Positions 4,048 through 57,577 of a stretch of 64,000 nt of DNA are shown here, piece after piece. The position numbers were made by a program, and so were the translations under genes. The first letter of the stretch is position 1. Each line of letters begins with the position of its first letter. The DNA comes from Rebecca billardiae RCC1528 (Eukaryota; Protista; Haptophyta). Under the pieces are notes generated by a model. It worked only from the letters and a program-made list of their open reading frames with translations, made no database searches and was not told the DNA's origin. Where the stretch lies: contig OZ251222.1 in NCBI GenBank assembly GCA_965240325.2, positions 1 to 64,000 on the forward strand, given 5' to 3'.

Positions 4048-4404
4048 GGTGGAGTGCAGTGCGTCTGCTCACGCGGTCTGCGATGCGCGCGCGAGGACGT
4101 CGAGGACGATAACGGACCTCGACCTCGTGTGTTACCCAATCAACCTGACGGTTCCGCGTGCTCTTCCGCACAGCGTGCCTGCTTCGCAGGAACGCATCTC
4201 GTGGGGCGAGGAACTTGTCACCCCTCGAAGGCCTTTTGTGGACCGTTCCAGTGGAACTGACTGGCGCGGGTAACAGTCAGGGCGACCGTTGGTCACAGAC
4301 GGCCTGCGGTGAAGTCCGGAGACACGGTATATTCTGTTCATCGGCCTGAGGATTCTCAGCCGAGCCTGTTCACATACTACTACGGTAGTGGAATCAAACC
4401 ACCG

Positions 4405-4452
4405 TACAGTTTACTAAGAATAAGAGACGCACACAGCTCAGGCAGGCGAGAT
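4405..4452 (+). repeat. 48-bp dispersed repeat, copy 1
   Basis: TACAGTTTACTAAGAATAAGAGACGCACACAGCTCAGGCAGGCGAGAT, identical to 41381-41428 (-) and 57530-57577 (+). Confidence 0.97.
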
Positions 4453-30854: not shown

Positions 30855-31399
30855 GCCGACCCGCGGCCAGTGGGCGCCATCGCCACGATGGCGGGAACCC
30901 CGGGCCCACGTACCGTTGCTCGCCCCCGGCAGCAGCGGGGCCGTCCGGGGGCCGTCCGCGCCTCCGCCGGTGGTCGGCAGCGGTGGCGAGCAATGATCAG
31001 AGCTCAGTCAGGCTACTCGACTGAGCTGTCAGCCGTGTGCGGACCGCGCGAATCACAGTTCGCGACGTCGCCGGCGCGGCAGCTCACCGGGACAGTGAGT
31101 CTAAGGGCTCCGGCCGTCGCATTGTCCGACTCGGCGTCGATGATTCCTCGCCGGCTCGCCGCAGACTCGCTCGGCTGCTCAGCCAGCCGCCAGCCGGTGC
31201 AACTCACCGTGCAAGACGAAGTTTCTGATATCTGATGGATTTTACCCCCGTATTGATCGGAGATCACGTCGTATTTCATCTCGCGGCGGCCTCGTCCGCG
31301 CCTTTTCGGCGGGGCGCCAAGTGGGCAGCACTTGTTCAGCAGCGCGGCGCATCGTCCGCGCGACGCGCTACGGGCCACCGGCTACTGGTGAGCGCGACA

Positions 31400-34300
31400 A
31401 TGGCGCTCTCGCCGCTCGGCCCGCGCGGCCCGGCCACCAGCGCGCGCGCGCCTCGGCCGCGGGCGCTCGGCGCGCGCGTGCTGCTGTCGGCCGTTCTGCT
31501 CGCCGCGCGCACCGCGGACGCGCAGATGGGCTTGAGCGCTGGCTTTGAGCACACGTGTGCGCTCCGCACGGCGACGAGCGAGCTGTGGTGCTGGGGCGCG
31601 AATGCGCTGTGGCAGCTTGGTTTGGGTGACGAGGAAGCGCGCGGCGACAGCACCGGCGAGATGAGCGGCAACCTACCGCCGCTGAATCTCGGCAGCGGCC
31701 TTTCGATCCTGATGGTGAGCAGCGGCGGCGGCACCTCGTGCGCGGTCGTCAGCACAGGCTTCAGCAACAGCCTCAAGTGCTGGGGCGCGAACTCGGCCGG
31801 GCAGCTCGGCAAGGGGAGCACGGCGTTCCGCGGGCCGCCGAACGCCACGCTCGGCGACAGCCTGCCCAGCGTCGACCTCGGCGGCGAGGCGGAGCCGCTC
31901 GCTGTCTCGGTCGGACACGACGAGTCGAGCGGCGGCTCTCACGTGCTCGTGCTGCTGCTCGGCGGCGAGGTGAAGGCGTTCGGCGCGAACGCGTTCGGGC
32001 AGCTCGGGTACAACGACGTGGCCGATCGTGGCTCCCAGCCGTCGGACATGGGCGGGGCCAATCTCCCGCCCGTCGTCTTTGCGCCGCCCGAGGGCGGCCA
32101 GTCCCTCCGGCGGCTGCGCGAGCTCGGCGGCGCCGCGCCGGCCGAGCGCGGCGCGCGCGCGCGCCGGCTGCAGCCGACGCTGCTTGTCGAGGGCGTCGCC
32201 GCGGGCGGCGCGACGTCGTGCGCGCTCAACCTTCAGTCGAGCCGCGAGCTCTACTGCTGGGGCCGCAACACGCACGGCCAGCTCGGCCTGGGCGACACCC
32301 TCGCGCGCGGCGCCGCGGACGGCGCGTACGCTGTCGGCTTCCTCAGCCCGATCGCGCTGCCGGCGCCTCCCGTCTCCGTGGCGGTGGGGCAGGCGCACGT
32401 GTGCGCCGTGGTGCAGGGCGCCGGGCTCAACGTCTCCGTCGCGTGCTGGGGCAACGGCGCGAGCGGCCGGCTCGGCTCGGGCGGCGTCGCCAACCTCGGC
32501 GACAACGCGGGCCAGATGGGCGACCAGCTGCCCACCGTGCAGCTGCCCGGGCTGGCGGGCGCGCCGGCCGAGGCGTGCGCGGGCGAGGCGCACACGTGCG
32601 TGCGGTACGCGAGCGGCGAGGTGGTCTGCTTCGGCGCCAACGTGGACGGCCGGCTGGGCTACGGCGACACCGCCGGGCGCGGCGAGACCAGCGCCACGAT
32701 GGGCACGTCCCTCCCGGCGGTCGTGGCGCCCGACGAGCTGCCGGCGACGGCGCTGGCGTGCGGCGACAGCTGGACGTGCGTCGCGCTCAACGGCTCGGCG
32801 GTGTACTGCTGGGGCGCGAACGGGCGGGGCCAGCTCGGGCAGGGCGACGTGGCCTCGCGCGGTGACTCGGACGTGACCAAGGTGAGCACCCTGCCGCAGG
32901 TCGAGCTGGGCGCCTTCTCGCCGCCATCGAGCCCGCCGCCACCGCCACCGCCGACGCCGCCGCCGAGCCCGCCGCCGAGCCCACCGCCGAGCCCGCCGCC
33001 GAGCCCGCCGCCGAGCCCACCGTCGTCGCCCCCGAGCCCGCCGCCACCGCCGCCGCCGACGCCGCCTCCGAGCCCACCTCCGAGCCCGCCGCCGAGCCCG
33101 CCGCCGAGCCCGCCGCCAAGCCCGCCGCCGAGCCCGCCGCCACCGCCACCGCCGACGCCGCCTCCAACCCCGCCACCGAGCCCGCCGCCGAGCCCGCCGC
33201 CGAGCCCGCCCCCGAGCCCGCCGCCGAGCCCACCGCCACCGCCGCCGCCAACCCCGCCGCCGAACCCGCCGCCGAGCCCGCCGCCGAGCCCGCCGCCGAG
33301 CCCGCCGCCGCTCCCGCCGCTGTCGCCGCCGCCGCTGCTGCCGCCGAACCCCTCGCCTCCGTCCACGCCGCCGCCGCCCGACCTGGGCGGCGCGCCCCAG
33401 CTCGTGTCTGTGAGCCTGGGCGAGGGGCTGGACACGATCGGCGCCGTCTTCGACCGGAGCACCAACCGGGGCGGCTTCGAGGTGGGCGAGAGCTTCGAGT
33501 GCGACAAGCTCTTCTCCACCGCCACCAAGCAGCGGCTCAGCTCGGACAGCGGCGGCGGCGACGCGGTGTGCGAGTGGCTGAGCGATTTCGCGCTCGTCGT
33601 CACGCTGCCCTCCGGCGTGGCGGCGCCGACCGACGCGGAGATCGGCGCGAGCGGCGCGGAGTCTCAGTTCTCGCTCGAGTTTGCGGCGGGCAAGATCTGC
33701 TCCGAGGCCTCCGAGGAGGACCAGTACCTTGAGACCGCCCGGGGGGAGAAGGGGCTGGGCGGCCTCGACGGGCTGGGCGGCGGCGGGCTGGGCGGCTGGC
33801 AGCCGGGCTCCAACCCGGCCGCGCTCGCGGGCGGCGGGCGGCGCGTGCGCGCCGTGCGCGCGGCGCGCGCGCTCATGGAGGAGGGCGGAGGCGGCGGCGA
33901 CGAGCCCGACGGCGGCGGGGGCGGCGGGGGCGGCGGCGGCGAGGAGGACTACAGCGCCAGCTCGACCGACCTGGTGTGCCCGGACGGCGTCGGCCAGCGG
34001 CGCAAGGTGGAGGGCCCGTCGGCGATCTCGGAGAGTGCGCAGCCGAGCGTGTCCGCGCTGCTCGCTCCGTCCGCGCACGCCGTCTGCCTGCCGCTCACGG
34101 TGTACGCGCCCTCGAGCGACGGCGGCGGCGCGTTCGGCGCGCTGTACAGCTGGAACGCGTCGGTCTCGCAGCCCGCGGCGTGCGCGCTCTCGCCCGGCTG
34201 CGCCGCCGCCCTGGCCAACCTGCGGCAGGTGGCGGCGAGCGCGCAGAGCCCGGCGCTCACCGTGCCCGCGGCCGCGCTGGACGTCTCGATGGGGGCCCTC

Positions 34301-37214
34301 TCGCTCGAGCTGCTCGTGGGCGTGCCGTACGGGGAGGAGTACGCGGCGCAGGCCGCGGTGGTCGGGCTGACCAGCACGCCGCTGCCCGCCGTCTCGATCA
34401 GCTCCGCCGCCGGCGCGAGCTGGCGCACCTCCACCCAGCTGCGGCTCGAGTCGAGCGCGCGGCTGGCGAGCGGCACCGGCTGCGCCGGGCCGGCGGTCGG
34501 CGGCTCTCTGGGCTACCTGTGGGAGCTCAGCCCGGCGCTGTCGGCGGAGAAGGCGGCGCGGCTCGCGGCGGGCGCGCTGAGCAAGCCGACGCTCGTGCTG
34601 CCCGCGTACACGCTCACCCCCGGCGTGACGTACACCATCACGCTCACGGTGAGCACCGCGACTGAGCTCTCCAACTCGGCGAGCACGACTCTGGTCGTGC
34701 TCGTGCAGGGCGTGCTCGCGACCATCAGCGGCGGCGGCGCGCGCGTGGTGGGCGCGGGCGGGGCGCAGCTGGCGGTGGACGCGAGCGCGTCGCGCGACCG
34801 CGACGCGCAGGGCGCGAGCCTCACCTTCGCGTGGCAGGGCCTCGACGCGCTGCGCTGCGAGCCGCACGACGCCAACAGCACGGGCGCGGGCTCGGACTGC
34901 ATACAGGCGGGCGACGCGAGCAGCGCGCTGCTCGGCCTCCGCCCGCTGGCCAACGGCTCGTACCCGCTGAGCGTGACGGTGGCGGCGGCGGACGGGCGCG
35001 AGGACACGGCGTCGCAGCTGCTCACCGTCGTCGCGGGCGCGCCGCCCGTCGTCACCATCGCCGAGCTCCCCACCGAGAACGCCGAGCCTTCGCAGAAGCT
35101 GCGGCTCTCAGGCTCGGTGTTTGAGCCGATCACGAACGCAGACCTGCGCCGCTCGCGCGACGTGCGGCTGCTGTGGTCGGTGGACGACGGCGGCGACGCC
35201 GGGCTCGAGCTGGGCTCGGCGCAGACGGTCGCCAGCCCGCTCTCCGTCGCCGACCTCGTGCTGCGCGCCAACGTGCTCGCGGCGGGCGAGACGTACTCGC
35301 TGCGGCTGAGCGCGACGTTTGGCGGCGTGACCGGCTTTGCGGTGCTCACGTTCAGCACGAACGCGCCGCCGCGCGGCGGCGTGTTCAGCGTGTCGCCGGA
35401 CTCGGGCGTGGGCCTCGACACGGAGTTCACGCTCGCGATGGTCGGCTGGGACGCGGACAACCTGCCGCTGCGCTACGCCTTCAGCCGGCGCAACGGCCGG
35501 CCGTCGCGCGGCCCGACCGACCAGTTCTCCGTCACGCTGCGCGCGAGCAGCCTCACGCCCATTCACAGCACGACGCTGCCCTCCGGCCGCGGCGGCGGCG
35601 GGGCGCTGACGCTGGTGGGCTCGGCGGTGGACCAGCTCGACGCGACGGTCACGCTCGAGCGCACCGTCACCGTCTCCGCGCCCGACGGCACCGCCTCCGG
35701 CGCGGGCGCGACCGCGTACGTGCGCGGCGTCGTGGACGCGCGGCTGTCGTCGCTGCTCGGCGCCTCGTCCGCGAGCGAGGTGGCCAACCTCGCCTCGTCG
35801 AGCGCGTCGCTGCTGAACGACGAGGAGGACGCGGACGACGGGACGCGGCGCGCGCTGCGCGGCGAGCTGATCAGCGCGCTCGACGTCGTCGCCTCCGCCG
35901 ACACCACCGCCGACTCGGAGAGCCTGGGGCTCGTGCTGGGCGCACTCGAGGAGCTCGTGGGCGCCCCCTCCGAGCTGGACGCGGGCGCGCGCGCGCAGGC
36001 GGCGGGGCTGGCGAGGAGCCTGATGAGCTCGGCGCGGAGCGAGGGGCTGGACGAGGCGGGAGCGAACGCGACGGTGAGCGCGCTCGCCTCGCTGCTTGAC
36101 GGCACCGTCGAGGGCGGCGACTCGGACGAGGACGCGTCCGCCGTCTCGTCGATCGTGCAGGAGGCGCTGGCCGACCTCGGCGCCGCGCTGCTGCTGGACG
36201 CGCTGGCGTGCGAGGAGGCGACGAGCGTCGTGTCCGGCTCGATCTCGATCAGCGCGGCGCGCACGCTGTCCAGCTGCCTCGCCGACTCGACGCAGACCGC
36301 GCCCGAGCTCGAGGAGGACGAGGACGGCGTCGCGGGCCCGTCTGCGCAGTTTGGCGCGGCGCTCGAGTCGGAGGCGCAGATCCCGTCGGAGGAGGAGTTC
36401 GATCTCGAGCTGATCTCGTGGCTGCTCGACCCGCACGAGGCGGCGGCGCGCGAGGCGGGCTCGGAGACGAACCTGAGCGCGCGCGTCTTCTCCGTCCGGC
36501 TGCTCGACTCGAGCGGCGACGAGATCGACGTCGACGGCCTCGCCGAGCCCGTGGCGCTCACGATCCGGCCGGCGGACGGCGGCAGCTTTGGCGACGTGGG
36601 CGGCGCGCGCTGCGACGCGGACGAGGACTGCAGCGGCGGCGAGGGCGCGGGCGAGGCGGGCGGCGCGTGCGTGCGCGGCGCGTGCGTGTGCAACGCCGCC
36701 TTCTCCGGGCGCACGTGCGCGCGCAAGCAGCGCTGCGTCTTCTGGGACGAGCAGGAGCTCGAGTGGAGCGACGACGGGTGCGAGGTCGCCTCGGTCTCGG
36801 CGGGTGCGGTCGTGTGCAAGTGCACGCACCTCACCGACTTTTGCGTGCAGGTGAACACGCTGAGCGCGGCGCAGATCGGCGCGGCGGCGCTGGCGATCTT
36901 CACCGGGCGCGTGTTCGTCGCCTCGCCCCTCGCCGCCGCGCTCGTCCTCGCCGTCCTCGGCATCGCCCTCGGCGGCGCGGCGGTGCTGCACGCGCACGAC
37001 TTGCGCACGCCGCACGCCGGCGCGCCGCTGCGCTGCGTCGCGGCGACGCGGCGCGCGCACCTGCGCGTGCAGGCGCGGACCGACCTGGCGCTGCTGCTCC
37101 GGCGCACGCGCGTGCTGCTCAGCGCCGCCAGGCGCCGCGGCCGGCGCGCCGCCGGCGAGCGCGGCGAGCGCGTCGGCGCCGGCGGCGCGCGCGTCGTCGT
37201 GCGCGCGCGGCGGC

Positions 37215-37253
<39 letters not shown>

Positions 37254-40200
37254 CGGACTCGGCCGCGGGCGCGGGCCGAGCGGGCGCGGGCGCGCGCGCG
37301 CTCTCGCGCGCCGGGCTGAGCTCGTTCGGCCTGCTCTCGCACTGCGCGTGGCGGCACCCGCTGATCGCCTCGCTGCTGCAGGACGACTCGCGCGTGTACC
37401 GCGCCGAGCAGTGGGTCGTCCTGTGGACCGGGCTGATGCTGGAGATGCTGTTTGTTTTCATCTTCTTTGACCTGAGCGAGGCCGGCGCGGGCGCGGACGC
37501 GGACGCGGGCGCGGACGGCGACGCCGATCCCGACGCGGCGGCGTCGTTCTGGCGGCCGCCCAGCGCGTCGGTGTTTGTGGCGTTCCTCATCGTGCTCGCG
37601 CAGAAGCTCTTCTGGGACATCCTCGTCGCGGGGCGGCTGATGGCGTGGGCGCACCACGCGGAGGGCGCGCGATGGCAGGAGCTTGCCGCGCGCCGGCGCG
37701 TGCGCGCGCTCTCGGCGCCCTCGCAGGGCGCGCTGCGCGAGCTGCTCGTGCTCTCCGCCGACCGCAAGCTCGCGGCGGTGCGCGCGCTGCACGCGCTGTG
37801 CGCCGAGCGCGGCCTGCCCTTCGCGCCGTGGCGCGACGCCTTCCGCGCCGCCGACGCGCCGCCGGAGCGCATGCCGCGGCTGCTCCGCACGGTGGGCCGC
37901 GCGATCACGCGCCGCGCGCCGACGTCCGAGCCGCCGCCGCCGCCGCCGCCGGCGCCCGGCGCGTTCCCCGCGGCGCGGCGCGGCGGCGAGCGCGGCTCCG
38001 GCTTTGTCTGCGTCGTCTCCGACGCGCGCGCGTACTCGGGCGTGCTCCGCGCCCACCGCCCCTCGCCCGGCGCGCGCGCCGGCCCCGCGCGCGGCCGCGC
38101 GCGCTCGCTGGTGGTCGAGAGAACCGCCGAGCGCGCGGCGGTGGCGGCGCTGCTGCAGGCGCCGGACGAGGAGCGGGAGGCTGTGCTGCGCGTGCTGCGC
38201 TCGGCGATCCGGCCGATCGAGTGGCAGGCGCTCGCGATCGCCGCGGCCTCGCTCGCCCGCGGCGAGGGCGACGGCCTCTCCTCGCCCTCGCGCGCGCGCG
38301 GCGCGGCGCGCGCGCGCGCTGGCCTGGGCTGGACGCGCGCGCGCACATCCGTGTTCGAGCGCGCGGGCTGGGCGGCCATGCTGGCGGCGTCCGCGCAGAG
38401 CGTGCGCGCGGCGCGCGACGCGCCGCAGAGGATGCCGCTCGGCCGCGCGCTCACCGCCCGCGCGCCCGGCGGCGGCGGCAGCGCCGCCGCCGACGGCGCC
38501 GCCGCGGGCGGCGCGGCCGGCGCGCCGCGCGTGCGCGCCCTGCAGCGCCCGCTGCTCGCGCTCGTTGCCGACGTGCGCCACGCGGCGTTCGAGGCGGGGC
38601 GCGCGGCGGAGGAGGCGCGCGCGCCCGCCGACGCGCGCGCCGCCGCGGCCGAGCGCGCGCGCCACCTGTGGGCGCTGACCACCGCGGCGGTGGCCGCGGT
38701 GCGCGCCCTCGACGAGGCGGCGGCAGCCTCCTCCTCCGCGCGCGCGCCCACCGTCGCGCTGCAGAGCTCAGCCGCGGCGCTCTCGGCGCGCGGCGCGGGC
38801 GCGCCCGGCGCGCCGTCGGCGCGCGAGCGGCGGCGCGCCGCGCTCGACGCGGCGCTGCGCGAGCTCGAGCTCGCGAGCCAGGCCGCGGCGCAGGTGGCCC
38901 TGCTGCCGCCGACGACGGCGGCCTGGGAGCTGCGCGCCGCGGCCGCCGCGGCCGCCGCGGCCGCCGTGCTGCCGAGCCGCAAGCCGTCGCACGCGGCGCG
39001 GAGCGCGGCGCGGCCGTCGGCGGCGGCGGCCTCGGCCTCGGCGGCGGGCGCGGCGTCGGGCCAAGGCGCGGCGCTTCCGCCACCCGCGCCCGCGCCGCCG
39101 CCGACGCCGACGCCGACGCCGCCACCGCCCGCCGCCGACGCCGCCGCGGACGGGACTGGCGGCCCCTGCTGCGCGCTCGGCGCGCTCGGCGCACTCGGCC
39201 GGCCGCGCGGCGTGTCGCGCGCCGCCGAGCTCGCCGAGCTTGCGGTGCACAAGCGCTGGCTGGTCGAGTCTGACGAGGGGCTGCTCGGGCTGTGGGCGCG
39301 CGTGCCGGAGGGGGCGCTGCACGGGCCAGCCGCCGCGCCCGCGCAGCCGCCGCGGCAGCAGCACCACCGCCTCCCCGCCAGCGCGGCCACTCCCAGCGAG
39401 CTCCCCGCGGGCGGCGCGCCGCGCGCCGCTCTCGCCGTGCGCTTTGTGCGCCTGGCGGGCCTAAGGTACAAGCTGGGCGCCCGCGCGCCCATCGAGCTGA
39501 ACGCGGCGTCGTGGCTGCGCGACGAGCTGCAGGCGGTGGACGTGGACCCGCGGCGGCACGCGCTCTCGGCACACCGCTCGAGCACGCGCTACCTCGCCAG
39601 ATACGATCTGGGCGAGGTGCGCGCGTGGCTGGGGCGCGCGCTCGAGCCCGCCGATGTGGTGATGGACGCGGCGTGGGCGACCGCGAGCGTGCTCGCCGCG
39701 ACGCGGCACCGCGCGGAGCGGCGCGCGCTCGCCGAGTTCTCCGCGCTGCACACGTTCGTGCGCCTGCGCCCGCGCCCCGCCTTCGCGCCCGGCACCGCCG
39801 TGCACGCCGCCGTCCTTGCCGAGCTCCGAGACTCGGGCGGGCGCGCGGCGCGGCTCGGCGCGCGCTGGGCGCGCACCGGCCGCGGCGTGCGCATCTCGCT
39901 GCACCGGCGCACGCTGCCCACGCTCACGCCGCACGCGGACGGGGCGGCGGACGCGGGCGGCGGCGGCGCCAAGCCCGCCGCCGCGCCGCGCGCCGCCGGC
40001 GCGCCGGCCGAGGCCGCGCGCGCGCGCGCGCACGCCGGCGGCGCGCGCGAGGCGGAGGCGGACCTCGCGGCCGCGCGCGCGGCCGTGCTCGCGGCCGACG
40101 CGGAGGCGCTGCGCGGCGCGGGCGTGCAGGTGGGGCCGCACGCGCCGCTGCGGCTGCTGCGCGTGCACGTCGCCGGCGCCGCGCCCTCCGCGCGCGAGAC

Positions 40201-41348
40201 GCACGCCCCCGCCCGCAGCCTGCTCGCGAGCGTCGGCCTCGGCCGCCGCGCGCAGCCGCCCGGCCGCGCGCCCGTGCACGTCATCTACGCCGTCGAGGGC
40301 GTGCGCACGGCAGCGGACGTGGGCGGCTCCAGCTACGTGCGGGCGGTGACGCACCTCGGCTCGGTCGCGCTCGCCGCCGACTCGGCGGGCGCGCTCGCGC
40401 TCGGCCGCGCGCTGCAGAGCCGGCCGCTGCTGTGCTACGCGCAGCCGACGCGCGCGCCGCCCGCCGACGCGGCCGCGGCCGAGCGCGCGGACGCGGCGGC
40501 CGACGAGGGCGCTCTCGCCGAGGAGATGGTCGCCCTAGTCCACCTGCCGCCCGACGTGGCGGCCGAGGTCGAGGCGGAGGCGGCGCGCGCGCACCTGCGC
40601 GTGCTCGTGCGCGCGTGGCGGCGCGCGCGCGGCGCGCGGCGGCCCAGCGCGGCCGCAGCCGCCCGCCGCGCCGCCGGCGGCGCGCCGCCCGTTGCGAACG
40701 CGGCCGACGCCGACGCCGAGGCGGAGGCGGAGCTGGCGGCGGAGGAGGGCGGGATCGAGATCGACTCGCGCATGCTGTGGTCGCGCGCGGACGACCTCGC
40801 GCTCTCCGCCCTCGACGCGCACGGCGTGCCCACCGCCGTGCTCTCGACGCTGCAGCCCTACGGTGCGCGCGCGACTGCTCCGCACGCGCGCGCGCGCCGC
40901 CGCCGCGCCGCGCCGCGCCGCGCCCGCCGCCGCACGCCTGACCCCGCGCTCCGTCGGACTCGCGCGCGCATGCACTGCCTGTGCCCGCGGGGCGCGCGCA
41001 GGCAAGGGGCGCGTGGTGATGTGGCGCGTGCGCATCGTCATGCTGTGCGTGTGGGCGGTGCTCGCCGTCTCCGCCTTCTTCGTCCTCGCGTACGCGCTGC
41101 AGCCGTCCTTCTACGGCGACACGTGGGTGTCGGTCTTCCACGCGTGGGCGCTGGACACCGCGTCCGAGTTTGCGCGCGAGCCGCTCGTCGTGGCGGGGAA
41201 GGCGCTGCTGCAGCTGCTCGTCGAGGCGCTCGTCGCGCTGCCCGCGTGCCTCGTCTGCCTCGCCGCGATCGGGTGCGACAAGCTGATCGGCGAGCGCGAC
41301 ACGGTCGACCACGGCGTCACCGTCCTCGACCAGGTCATGGAGCTGTGA
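31400..41348 (+). CDS. Giant polycystin-1/REJ-like receptor with RCC1-like repeats, SPPP stalk, REJ module, EGF and GPS motif
   Basis: Signal peptide; about 7 SAGxxHTC/CWGxNxxGQLG repeats; SPPP tract; NAPPRGGVFSVSPDSGVGLDTEF (REJ); CVRGACVCNAAFSGRTC (EGF); GPS CVFWD..WSDDGC..CKCTHLTDF; several TM helices; intron 40863-41001 leads to a final TM exon ending at 41348. Confidence 0.85.
32920..33380 (+). repeat. Coding minisatellite (CCGAGCCCGCCG)n encoding an SPPP stalk
   Basis: Tandem 12-bp units read directly from the sequence. Confidence 0.95.
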
Positions 41349-41380
41349 CGAGTGTGAAGCTTGTGATGATGCAAGGTGAG

Positions 41381-41428
41381 ATCTCGCCTGCCTGAGCTGT
41401 GTGCGTCTCTTATTCTTAGTAAACTGTA
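41381..41428 (-). repeat. 48-bp dispersed repeat, copy 2
   Basis: Exact reverse complement of 4405-4452. Confidence 0.97.
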
Positions 41429-41568
41429 GGGGTGATTGAGGTTCAAGATCGTCTGATCTCATGATTCTTCGGAACTTGTACCCCATACTGTGATGGGCAT
41501 ACTGTGATCCCTCACCCATCCGCGCATGGACATTCACCGCGAACACCCATCACCTAACTAACCGCCTG

Positions 41569-44135
41569 ATAACAGCGCGCGTCGCGCTCCTTATCACTGC
41601 CCGGTCATTACGGTGGGCAGACGCTGTCAGTCGTCGCGGGGGGGCCGGGCGGCGAGGCAGCGCCCGCCCCGCGGCGCTGACTCAAGCCGCACCCTGCCCC
41701 GGCGCGGCGCTCCAACGCCGAGGGAGGGCGGGCGGGAGGCGGTGGAGTGCAGCTGGCTGACCGTACGGGTAGCTGGCACCGTTGACCGGCCACACGGGGT
41801 CGGCGCCGCGGCACGGACGGGCGGTAGCTGCGGCGACGGTCGGGCAGGACGCGCCGGCGAGGGCAGCGCGGGCTGGAGGCGGAGAGCTGCACGAGTTCAC
41901 GACGTGCGTCCCACCCAAATGATGGTCACCCCGAGCGTACCCGACTGGCACGGCTCCCACAATCCTGCGGCGCCACGCCGCGCCGCAAAGGTGAGCTGCT
42001 CGAGGCACGTCGACCAATAAGCTCATAGGGGGGGGCAGCGAGCGCCGGCACCGAGTCCGGGGAGGCGCGCGCGGGGCAGAGTCCGGGAGGGAGTCCGGGC
42101 CTGTGCGGAGCGGCGCCGGCAGTCATAACGCGATAACCGCCGGACTGCCAAACCCACCACTCCCGTCGCGTCGGCCATCGCCCCATAACAGCGCGCGTCG
42201 CGCTCCTTATCACTGCCCGGTCATTACGGTGGGCAGACGCTGGATTGCCTGGGGCCGTCAGTCGTCGCGGGGGGGCCGGGCGGCGAGGCAGCGCCCGCCC
42301 CAAAGAGGCGCAGCGCCAGGCGCCACGCCGGCATGGACGGCGTCGGCCGGCGCGGACGAGGCCCGGCCCGGCCCCGGCCCCAACGGCGCTGCGTCGTGCC
42401 ACGCTCCGACGCATGCTGCCAACGCCAAGCGTGTGGCGTCGGTAGCGGCAGCACCCGGGAAGTACGTGCGAGGCGCGGGCCCCGCCCAGCGCCCTGCGGC
42501 GTTGATCTCGCCCGCAGGCAGTCCCAAAAACGCCAGCATCGCCACGGCCGAGCGTCGAACCGAGTTGGTGCCCACGCCCTTGGTGGCGAGCCCCAGCGCG
42601 CGGCACTCACCGCGCAGCCACGACAGGTACGCCGCGTACGTGACAGCGCGCCCAGCGTCGTCGACAAACAGCGGCGCCTCGGAAGCGGTGGCCGGGCGGT
42701 GTAAGAGGAAACTTGCCACCGCGCGAACCGGGCAGAGCGGCGAGTCCGGAATGGAAGGGAGCAGCTCCCAAGCTTCCTCCCCGGGGTGGTGCTTCCAGCT
42801 GCGCACGAGGATGTACAGGCCGCGCGGCGAGGAGGAGACGTCGCAGCAGCGCAGCAGCTTCCACGGTGCCCAGCGAGAGGATGATCCGGACGCCACCGTC
42901 TCCGAGCGCACGACCGTGAAGAGCTGTACCAGCAGCATCGCAAAGAAGCGCGCCGTCTCAGGGCGCACGCGGGCCGCGATCGCGAGAAGCACCGCCGGCG
43001 GCAGCGCGACCGCTTGGCCGCGTCCGCGTCCGCTCTCCTGGCGGTAGCGCGTCACCAGGCGGCGGCGGCCGACATCCACAATCGGGGCGGCCAGGTCGCC
43101 GGCGAGCTGCGCAGCAACCTGCACCGCGGAGATGTACTGCTCGATGGAGCCCGCCGCGTAGCCCGCTTCGCCGAGGTGCACCGCGAAACGGCGGAGCGAG
43201 AGCGCGGTCGGCGGCCAGCACGCCCCTTCGCCTGCGCGGCGCGCGAAAGCTCCGTACGCGCGCAGACCTGCCCGGTGCCGGCCGTCGACGGCAGGCAACA
43301 CCACGAGTGACGCGAAGCGACCGTCCAGCCATCGCGCGTAGCCCTGCGTCGACATGATTGTGGCGGGGCCTCCCCCTCGGCTGGTGAGCGGGGGCAGCCG
43401 CTGCCCCGGGCCGGACCCAGGCGCCAGGCGTCGTCCGGCTCGCGCGAGCGGCGCGGGTCGCGCGGGCGGCCGGCCGCGGGGTGGGCGCAGCTGGCGGTAC
43501 CGGCTGGCCGGCCGGCGGAGGAAACGCTTGGTTGCGCCCGACGCGCGGAGCCCCGGCCCCGCGCCCGCGGCCCACGCCCGCCGCGGCCCCGGCGCCGGCC
43601 GAAGAGACGCGCTGCGCTTTTCGAGCCGCCCGTTGGGTCTGCGCCATCGGCATGGCGACGCGCGTAGAGATTGGAGGGGAACGGAGGAGGCGGTGGAGTG
43701 CAGCTGGCTGACCGTACGGGTAGCTGGCACCGTTGACCGGCCACACGGGGTCGGCGCCGCGGCACGGACGGGCGGTAGCTGCGGCGACGGTCGGGCAGGA
43801 CGCGCCGGCGAGGGCAGCGCGGGCTGGAGGCGGAGAGCTGCACGAGTTCACGACGTGCGTCCCACCCAAATGATGGTCACCCCGAGCGTACCCGACTGGC
43901 ACGGCTCCCACAATCCTGCGGCGCCACGCCGCGCCGCAAAGGTGAGCTGCTCGAGGCACGTCGACCAATAAGCTCATAGGGGGGGGCAGCGAGCGCCGGC
44001 ACCGAGTCCGGGGAGGCGCGCGCGGGGCAGAGTCCGGGAGGGAGTCCGGGCCTGTGCGGAGCGGCGCCGGCAGTCATAACGCGATAACCGCCGGACTGCC
44101 AAACCCACCACTCCCGTCGCGTCGGCCATCGCCCC
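41569..44135 (-). mobile_element. Tyrosine-recombinase element with split direct repeats (Ngaro/PAT-like), lacking RT
   Basis: Sense order on the minus strand: A1 (44135-43686), YR ORF, B1 (42301-42185), A2 (42184-41735), 64-bp spacer, B2 (41670-41569); A copies are 450 bp and look identical; B copies differ by a 15-bp indel. Confidence 0.92.
42258..43355 (-). CDS. Tyrosine recombinase of DIRS/Ngaro type
   Basis: N-terminal binding region (LRRFAVHL..GYAAGSIEQYISAV); catalytic R (VVRS), K (SWKH), LCPVRAV, PLF, NSVRR at the HxxR position, GRW and RTY; the frame is open further upstream to 43730. Confidence 0.9.
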   Translation of the reverse strand: MSTQGYARWLDGRFASLVVLPAVDGRHRAGLRAYGAFARRAGEGACWPPTALSLRRFAVHLGEAGYAAGSIEQYISAVQVAAQLAGDLAAPIVDVGRRRLVTRYRQESGRGRGQAVALPPAVLLAIAARVRPETARFFAMLLVQLFTVVRSETVASGSSSRWAPWKLLRCCDVSSSPRGLYILVRSWKHHPGEEAWELLPSIPDSPLCPVRAVASFLLHRPATASEAPLFVDDAGRAVTYAAYLSWLRGECRALGLATKGVGTNSVRRSAVAMLAFLGLPAGEINAAGRWAGPAPRTYFPGAAATDATRLALAACVGAWHDAAPLGPGPGRASSAPADAVHAGVAPGAAPLWGGRCLAARPPRDD

Positions 44136-57529: not shown

Positions 57530-57577
57530 TACAGTTTACTAAGAATAAGAGACGCACACAGCTCAGGCAGGCGAGAT
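57530..57577 (+). repeat. 48-bp dispersed repeat, copy 3
   Basis: Identical to 4405-4452. Confidence 0.97.

Follow-up and report, generated by a model that had tools for sequence, protein, structure and literature searches.

The window analysed here comprises 64,000 nucleotides of contig OZ251222.1 from the haptophyte Rebecca billardiae RCC1528. On its minus strand, read from 44135 to 41569, lies a 2,567-bp element in which a 5' terminal repeat (A1) is followed by the open reading frame (ORF) of a predicted tyrosine recombinase (YR), the abutting internal repeats B1 and A2, a 64-bp spacer, and a 3' terminal repeat (B2). Its features are listed below.

43686–44135, minus strand: A1, 5' terminal repeat, 450 bp, 100% identical to A2
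43356–43685, minus strand: leader from A1 to the YR start codon, 330 bp
42258–43355, minus strand: predicted YR gene, 365 codons plus stop (profile comparison with Cre, AlphaFold, Foldseek)
42185–42301, minus strand: B1, internal copy of the 3' terminal repeat, 117 bp, ending ..GTTAT and matching B2
42090–42206, minus strand: B1/A2 junction core, comprising ~22 nt from the end of B and ~95 nt from the start of A (three-way alignment)
41735–42184, minus strand: A2, internal copy of the 5' terminal repeat, 450 bp (repeat search, self-BLAST)
41671–41734, minus strand: spacer between A2 and B2, 64 bp (self-BLAST); 62–83 bp at the equivalent place in related families
41569–41670, minus strand: B2, 3' terminal repeat, 102 bp, ending ..GTTAT and lacking 15 nt found in B1

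The repeat coordinates were obtained by self-BLAST and a repeat search, both of which gave 450 of 450 identical positions for A1 and A2. In self-BLAST, B1 and B2 were 86% identical across their alignment, the differences being 2 mismatches and a single 15-nt indel, and no base separated B1 from A2. The junction core also takes in the first ~95 nt of A1 (44135 down to 44041). Comparison of the flanks (5' flank ..gggtttc, 3' flank caggcgg..) gave no target-site duplication (TSD) at the element. The ORF occupies an open minus-strand frame that runs from 43730 to 42258; its first in-frame ATG, at 43355, aligns with the YR start codon of a related family, and its stop codon (42260–42258) is located 44 nt into B1, so that the final 14 codons and the stop lie within the repeat. 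An earlier sequence-only reading of this DNA had described the A1-YR-B1-A2-spacer-B2 layout, the identical A repeats, the exact abutment of B1 and A2, the open YR frame running into B1, and the missing TSD, and all of these were confirmed. The B1/A2 junction is a stored copy of the junction that the two outer ends would form, and presumably the site of the recombinase.

The repeats are direct, not inverted; the inverted terminal repeats and internal complementary region of DIRS1-like elements were not found. No reverse transcriptase (RT), RNase H, or gag domain was detected inside 41569–44135. The G+C content was about 74% at the element against roughly 72% on average in the window, and at ~74% G+C long open frames carry little weight by themselves. 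The 28-nt start of A occurred 111 times in the 72-Mb assembly, against 0 for the reversed control pattern. An assembly artefact was considered and judged very unlikely because the A..B/A..B layout was seen again at more than 40 other loci.

Two other features lie near the element. A 48–59-bp repeat at 41381–41439, 130 bp from the 3' end of the element, was also present at 4394–4452 and 57530–57577 of the window (93–100% identity), and contigs of run X1 covered it at a very high depth of about 110x. On the plus strand, a 3,386-codon open frame (31235–41395) with RCC1-like repeats and long (S/T)PPP-rich tracts stops 170 bp from the element; it is probably in part a real gene and in part a G+C-driven open frame.

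We then characterized the YR frame. A word-based homologue search with the window YR gave no match, and Pfam with this sequence alone returned just a weak, sub-threshold match to an N-terminal SAM-like domain. A five-sequence YR profile did not reach the recombinases in the PDB, and its AlphaFold model had a pLDDT of 46.6. An exhaustive profile search seeded with in-genome homologues found 7,478 YR relatives. The match to Cre in the PDB and the good model came from a 60-sequence alignment that replaced the five-sequence one and that bears the signature of eukaryotic Cre-like recombinases. The family profile built on it matched Cre over its whole length (E 5e-25), and 40 of its 60 members matched PF00589. 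The AlphaFold model on the same alignment reached a pLDDT of 83.8 and a pTM of 0.80, and its best Foldseek matches were Cre and Cre-DNA complexes (TM 0.6–0.7 over about 310 residues). These results show that the window ORF encodes a genuine Cre-like tyrosine recombinase, and the tyrosine-recombinase call of the sequence-only reading is borne out by this profile, model, and fold match.

Of the catalytic set R..K..HxxR..W/H..Y, the YR has R150, K188, R267, W290, and Y298, with N264 at the usual position of His-I. R150 and K188 were invariant in the 60-sequence alignment and R267, W290, and Y298 nearly so; the spacing of the last three parallels that of R292, W315, and Y324 in Cre. His occupied the position of N264 in 55 of the 60 sequences. 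With Asn there in a multi-copy family of the same genome as well (F2, described below) and Thr in the nearest environmental relative, Asn264 looks like a clade trait instead of a lesion. The dN/dS of the YR, estimated over 163 codons against a pseudogenised fragment on contig 33 (C33), was 0.38.

The translation context of the gene is awkward. The YR start codon sits downstream of a long ORF in another frame, and YR expression is uncertain because the region 5' of the YR in full-length relatives is deleted here. The leader has an ATG 32 nt past A1, followed by an Arg/Gly-rich frame of ~95 codons. This ATG is colinear in position with the gag start of the full-length relatives, which lies 15 nt past A1, and the similarity of the frame to their gag was not significant once corrected for composition. 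The frame is possibly what survives of the first ~95 gag codons after an internal deletion.

When the whole assembly was searched at the DNA level with the 2,567-bp unit, only the element's own locus was returned, and no other locus exceeded 86% identity. The A1-A2 spacing of 1,951 bp was likewise found only in the window element among about 50 A pairs. The 2.57-kb form is therefore a single copy in the 72-Mb assembly, not a multi-copy family. The sequence-only reading had proposed a recombinase-only family with split direct repeats (SDRs). No such family exists here, since there is one copy of the unit and its relatives are of two kinds, those encoding gag and RT/RNase H and those that are gene-less. 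That reading had also named a one-off deletion, seen as one copy among RT-bearing relatives, as the finding that would speak against it, and this is essentially what we found. Its description of the element as young is reasonable, as A1 and A2 are 100% identical. With a single copy, deletion in situ after insertion is indistinguishable from transposition of an already deleted element. In the contigs of one sequencing study, with small fragments, no empty site, circle junction, or RNA evidence was found.

The 3' 1.07 kb of the element (YR end, B1, A2, spacer, and B2) showed 74–86% identity to many loci. One full-length (FL) copy, fetched whole (L061, 6.67 kb), has the order A1, gag-like ORF, RT/RNase H ORF, tandem repeats, YR remnant, B1/A2, spacer, and B2. 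Its gag-like ORF (775 aa) has a zinc-knuckle-like motif. Its RT/RNase H ORF (576 aa) has PF00078, an F-V-D-D motif, and the D-E-D-D pattern of RNase H, and about 0.8 kb of tandem repeats separates it from the YR remnant. The window element is colinear with this copy from the YR start through B2, and over the first 80 nt of A the two share 95% identity. The second family, F2, has gag, RT/RNase H, and an intact YR; its RT is 49% identical to that of FL and its YR 47% identical to that of the window. The sequence-only reading had pointed to a PAT/Ngaro split-direct-repeat layout and had suggested looking for a longer copy with RT and RNase H. The layout A1..B1/A2..B2 proved correct, and the longer copy was found both as FL and as F2. 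Donors of RT and gag, which that reading had invoked, are present in the same genome, with matching ends, in the form of FL.

A methyltransferase was found in neither FL nor F2, whose RT/RNase H ORFs, of 576 and 585 aa, respectively, stop shortly past RNase H. In FL, some 35 residues separate the RNase H motif from the end of the ORF, beyond which there are only tandem repeats; Pfam on FL returned RVT_1 only. The lack of a methyltransferase was judged on FL and F2, and the window copy does not contain that region. The FL layout is that of Ngaro, with SDRs, the order gag-RT/RNase H-YR, and no methyltransferase (PMC13465315, PMC7192593).

Outside this genome, the closest YR (42% identical) is encoded on a metagenome contig downstream of an RT ORF; the protein clusters of the nearest relatives bear no family name. 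The placement of the YR clade rests on such linkage to RT in relatives: because FL, F2, and the environmental YR are all linked to RT, the RT-bearing state is taken as ancestral, and given this ancestry the window element would be a deletion derivative.

Several copies of these and other families were seen along the way. One F2 copy (G000:C5:422836-428410; L034 and L066) has A1, gag, RT/RNase H, YR, and B1 and is missing the A2-B2 tail; another (L036) has the complete tail, and in a third (L035) an A precedes a second A in inverted orientation. Nested inverted repeats surround GTTAT in the F2 junction, which in this respect resembles a lox-type site. In a relative of the closest environmental YR (L063), an F2-like A start comes directly after a GTTAT end. 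Elsewhere in the genome, YRs near an RT match point to at least two more families of YR retroelements (G000:C3:2452618, C17:948643, C23:377820, C17:806221, and C17:440272; C19:150370 and five others). One has its YR in open frames of ~1,166 aa, about 1.2–1.3 kb from the RT match. In the other, the YR is 364 aa long and lies downstream of the RT match, about 0.9 kb away, and an MMETSP transcript falls in the protein cluster of this 364-aa YR.

The junction core was delimited by aligning the B/A junctions of three families, those of the window element, FL, and L020 (gene-less elements described below). Over ~22 nt at the end of B and ~95 nt at the start of A, the three were 90–100% identical, against 25–45% for the rest of A; all three end in GTTAT and begin with the same 28-mer. 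The junction of F2 is different in sequence. We compared 14 insertions of the clade, including that of the window. Their 5' ends lie precisely at the A start and none has a TSD. The 5' flanks mostly end in T-T followed by C, G, or T and preceded by G or A, and so resemble the B end, GGTTAT. Exact 5' ends, look-alike flanks, and the lack of a TSD are what site-selective recombination at the B/A junction would give, and short junction sequences have been proposed to define the integration sites of DIRS elements (PMC7192593). Two independent FL insertions (L070, G000:C18:224160-224280; L071, G000:C11:2491400-2491520) occupy the identical position in a palindromic repeat (..cctcgctcaga..tctgagcgagg..ccgattc/, the slash marking the position), which suggests strong target selectivity.

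Considering these results together, we propose that the window element is, in all likelihood, a single-copy, internally deleted derivative of an Ngaro-type SDR tyrosine-recombinase retrotransposon. It is neither a self-propagating recombinase-only family nor a Crypton-like DNA transposon, and it is a derivative and not an autonomous Ngaro member because RT/RNase H are absent within it. The ancestral order would be A1, gag, RT/RNase H, YR, B1A2, spacer, and B2, which is still found in FL and F2. A deletion would have taken most of gag and all of RT/RNase H, leaving both complete ends, the internal copy of the B/A junction, and an intact YR gene. If the element is mobile, an A1-to-B2 RNA would be copied by gag and RT supplied in trans, and its ends would be joined with the internal B1/A2 copy as a guide. 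The YR would then recombine the joined junction with a B-end-like site in the genome (G-R-T-T-T-C), without generating a TSD. For DIRS-1, it has been demonstrated experimentally that the RT acts in trans on an RT-less construct (PMC7192593).

What such a derivative does in the genome depends on the population that shares its ends. A whole-genome profile search found 25 YR-like places. The window YR is the sole intact one of its clade, the others being fragments or members of families with other ends, and is thus the sole intact recombinase among about 50 elements with the same ends. The 15 FL-type loci were 99.8–100% identical across 1.35 kb including the YR remnant, and all 15 shared one set of YR lesions, with a 1-nt frameshift after codon 11, the loss of 600 bp of the catalytic core, and a further frameshift. 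Hence, the FL copies multiplied after their YR had broken. Their RT frames were open in 8 copies, and gag was in frame from its ATG across the 368 codons fetched in at least one copy. The 5' 1.5 kb of four FL copies differed only by indels, with 0 substitutions, chiefly in the copy number of a 110-bp gag repeat; as 110 is not a multiple of 3, this number turns the FL gag frame on or off. The 110-bp unit, near the gag start, was seen to vary among L076–L078 and L061. The L020-type elements, of about 4.8 kb, have an A-A spacing of 3.5–4.8 kb and number at least 35 pairs. Their A and B pairs were 100% identical and no gag, RT, or YR was detectable in them. The population also includes L003, a miniature of 1.86 kb, and L018, a solo A-B unit.

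This population may be explained by a division of labour, in which the window YR acts in trans on the FL and gene-less elements and FL provides gag and RT, so that two defective elements make up one autonomous system. We hold this reading tentatively, judging its chance to be somewhat short of even. It accounts for the sole intact YR of the clade among 25 YR-like places, for 15 nearly identical FL loci that spread after losing their YR while RT, and gag in at least one copy, stayed open, and for the many gene-less elements with identical repeat pairs. The junction core, 90–100% conserved in three families in which the remaining A has diverged, would be the shared site, and F2, the other family with an intact YR, has an unlike junction. 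The dN/dS of 0.38 is also in its favour. Several points weigh against it, namely the out-of-frame ORF upstream of the YR, the possibility that the F2 YR cross-acts, the possible recent loss of a master copy with an intact YR, and the variable 3' ends of FL. In its wider form, about 50 elements, the majority gene-less, would be mobilised by a two-component system that acts at the shared junction site of ~115 nt; this too is plausible without being the side on which we would wager.

The variable 3' ends concern 8 of the 15 FL copies, which are truncated at differing points within B2 or the spacer and have exact 5' ends. This may mean that a part of integration needs neither a complete junction nor a precise YR reaction. 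Alternatively, the A side of the junction may determine the cut, or imperfectly closed cDNA may have been integrated. The truncated copies, seen among FL copies on other contigs (L008–L014, L016, and L017), each have unique flanks. Circular permutation of the 3'-truncated copies, in which the missing B end would have shifted to the 5' side, was rejected because nine of nine 5' ends (L067–L075) begin at the A start; a further five 5' ends likewise begin exactly there.

The window element may also be an inert relic, a recent insertion that was deleted in place, whose YR is open merely from youth and which neither moves nor supplies a recombinase. It is found in a single copy, its A1 and A2 are 100% identical and have had little time to decay, the deletion took the sequence upstream of the YR gene, and B2 is already 15 nt shorter than B1. 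Such a relic would, however, leave about 50 recently spread YR-less elements, with their precise 5' ends and common target motif, without a matching recombinase, and on balance we lean against it while taking it as a serious possibility. In the least likely reading, which we consider very improbable, the element is a Crypton-like DNA element that leaves as a DNA circle (e.g., by A1 x A2 recombination, 1,951 bp with the B/A junction) and integrates again through its own YR, with no reverse transcription involved: the YR is its sole coding content, its direct repeats could, from their layout, free a circle with the junction, and it has no TSD, but neither a second copy nor a simple A, YR, B insertion of the subfamily was found, all close relatives are retroelements or derivatives of them, Cryptons have no long terminal repeats (PMC3212892), and related families carry the whole A2-spacer-B2 tail to new sites as RNA copying predicts. 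The sequence-only reading had offered this DNA circle as an alternative, and it gained no support, as an RT lies upstream of the YR in the closest relatives both in the genome and in the environment.

To our knowledge, no study has dissected how elements of the DIRS order carry out their integration step. The genome-wide pattern could matter in this respect, as the recombinase gene is physically apart from its presumed substrate. Both parts, one gene copy and a conserved junction of ~115 nt, are easily handled, so that a single knockout could test whether SDR retroelements need a YR for integration and, at the same time, whether two elements that are each defective can be maintained by one another.

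Among known systems, the window element is closest to the Ngaro-like elements of the DIRS order. It shares with them the SDRs in the order A1...B1A2...B2, a YR on the 3' side, and the lack of a TSD, and its FL relatives share the order gag, RT/RNase H, and YR without a methyltransferase. The window copy differs from Ngaro-like elements in having no RT/RNase H and a gag stub at most, in being a single copy, and in its Asn at the His-I position of the YR. The SDR layout and the YR type are also those of PAT-like elements (PAT and kangaroo). However, PAT-like and DIRS1-like elements have a methyltransferase domain after RNase H (PMC7192593, PMC13465315), whereas the relatives here do not. Cryptons resemble the window element in coding only for a YR and in having no DDE-type TSD. 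They have only 4–6-bp direct repeats instead of long terminal repeats and no RT-bearing sister copies (PMC3212892), in contrast to the 450-bp and ~110-bp split repeats and the RT-encoding sisters seen here.

Protein-poor derivatives that keep the ends of their family and are mobilised in trans are known as TOC1, a non-autonomous DIRS retrotransposon of Chlamydomonas, and as SIRE/VIPER (PMC9940879, PMC7192593). These lack the recombinase as well, whereas the window element retains it as its one gene; the gene-less L020-type elements are thus nearer analogues of TOC1. INT1, in the 16-kb repeats of the Chlamydomonas MT+, is derived from a DIRS element that lost its RT domain and kept its tyrosine recombinase (PMC9940879), as in the window element. 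Unlike the latter, INT1 keeps RNase H and a methyltransferase, forms a tandem array, and has no related transposable-element family in its genome; the window element has intact SDR ends and about 50 relatives with the same ends. Both non-autonomous DIRS-order elements, such as TOC1, and an RT-less DIRS remnant that keeps its YR, such as INT1, are therefore already known. By itself, the window element is an ordinary deletion derivative, and its interest, which is moderate, lies in its being a possible sole source of recombinase for a split system.
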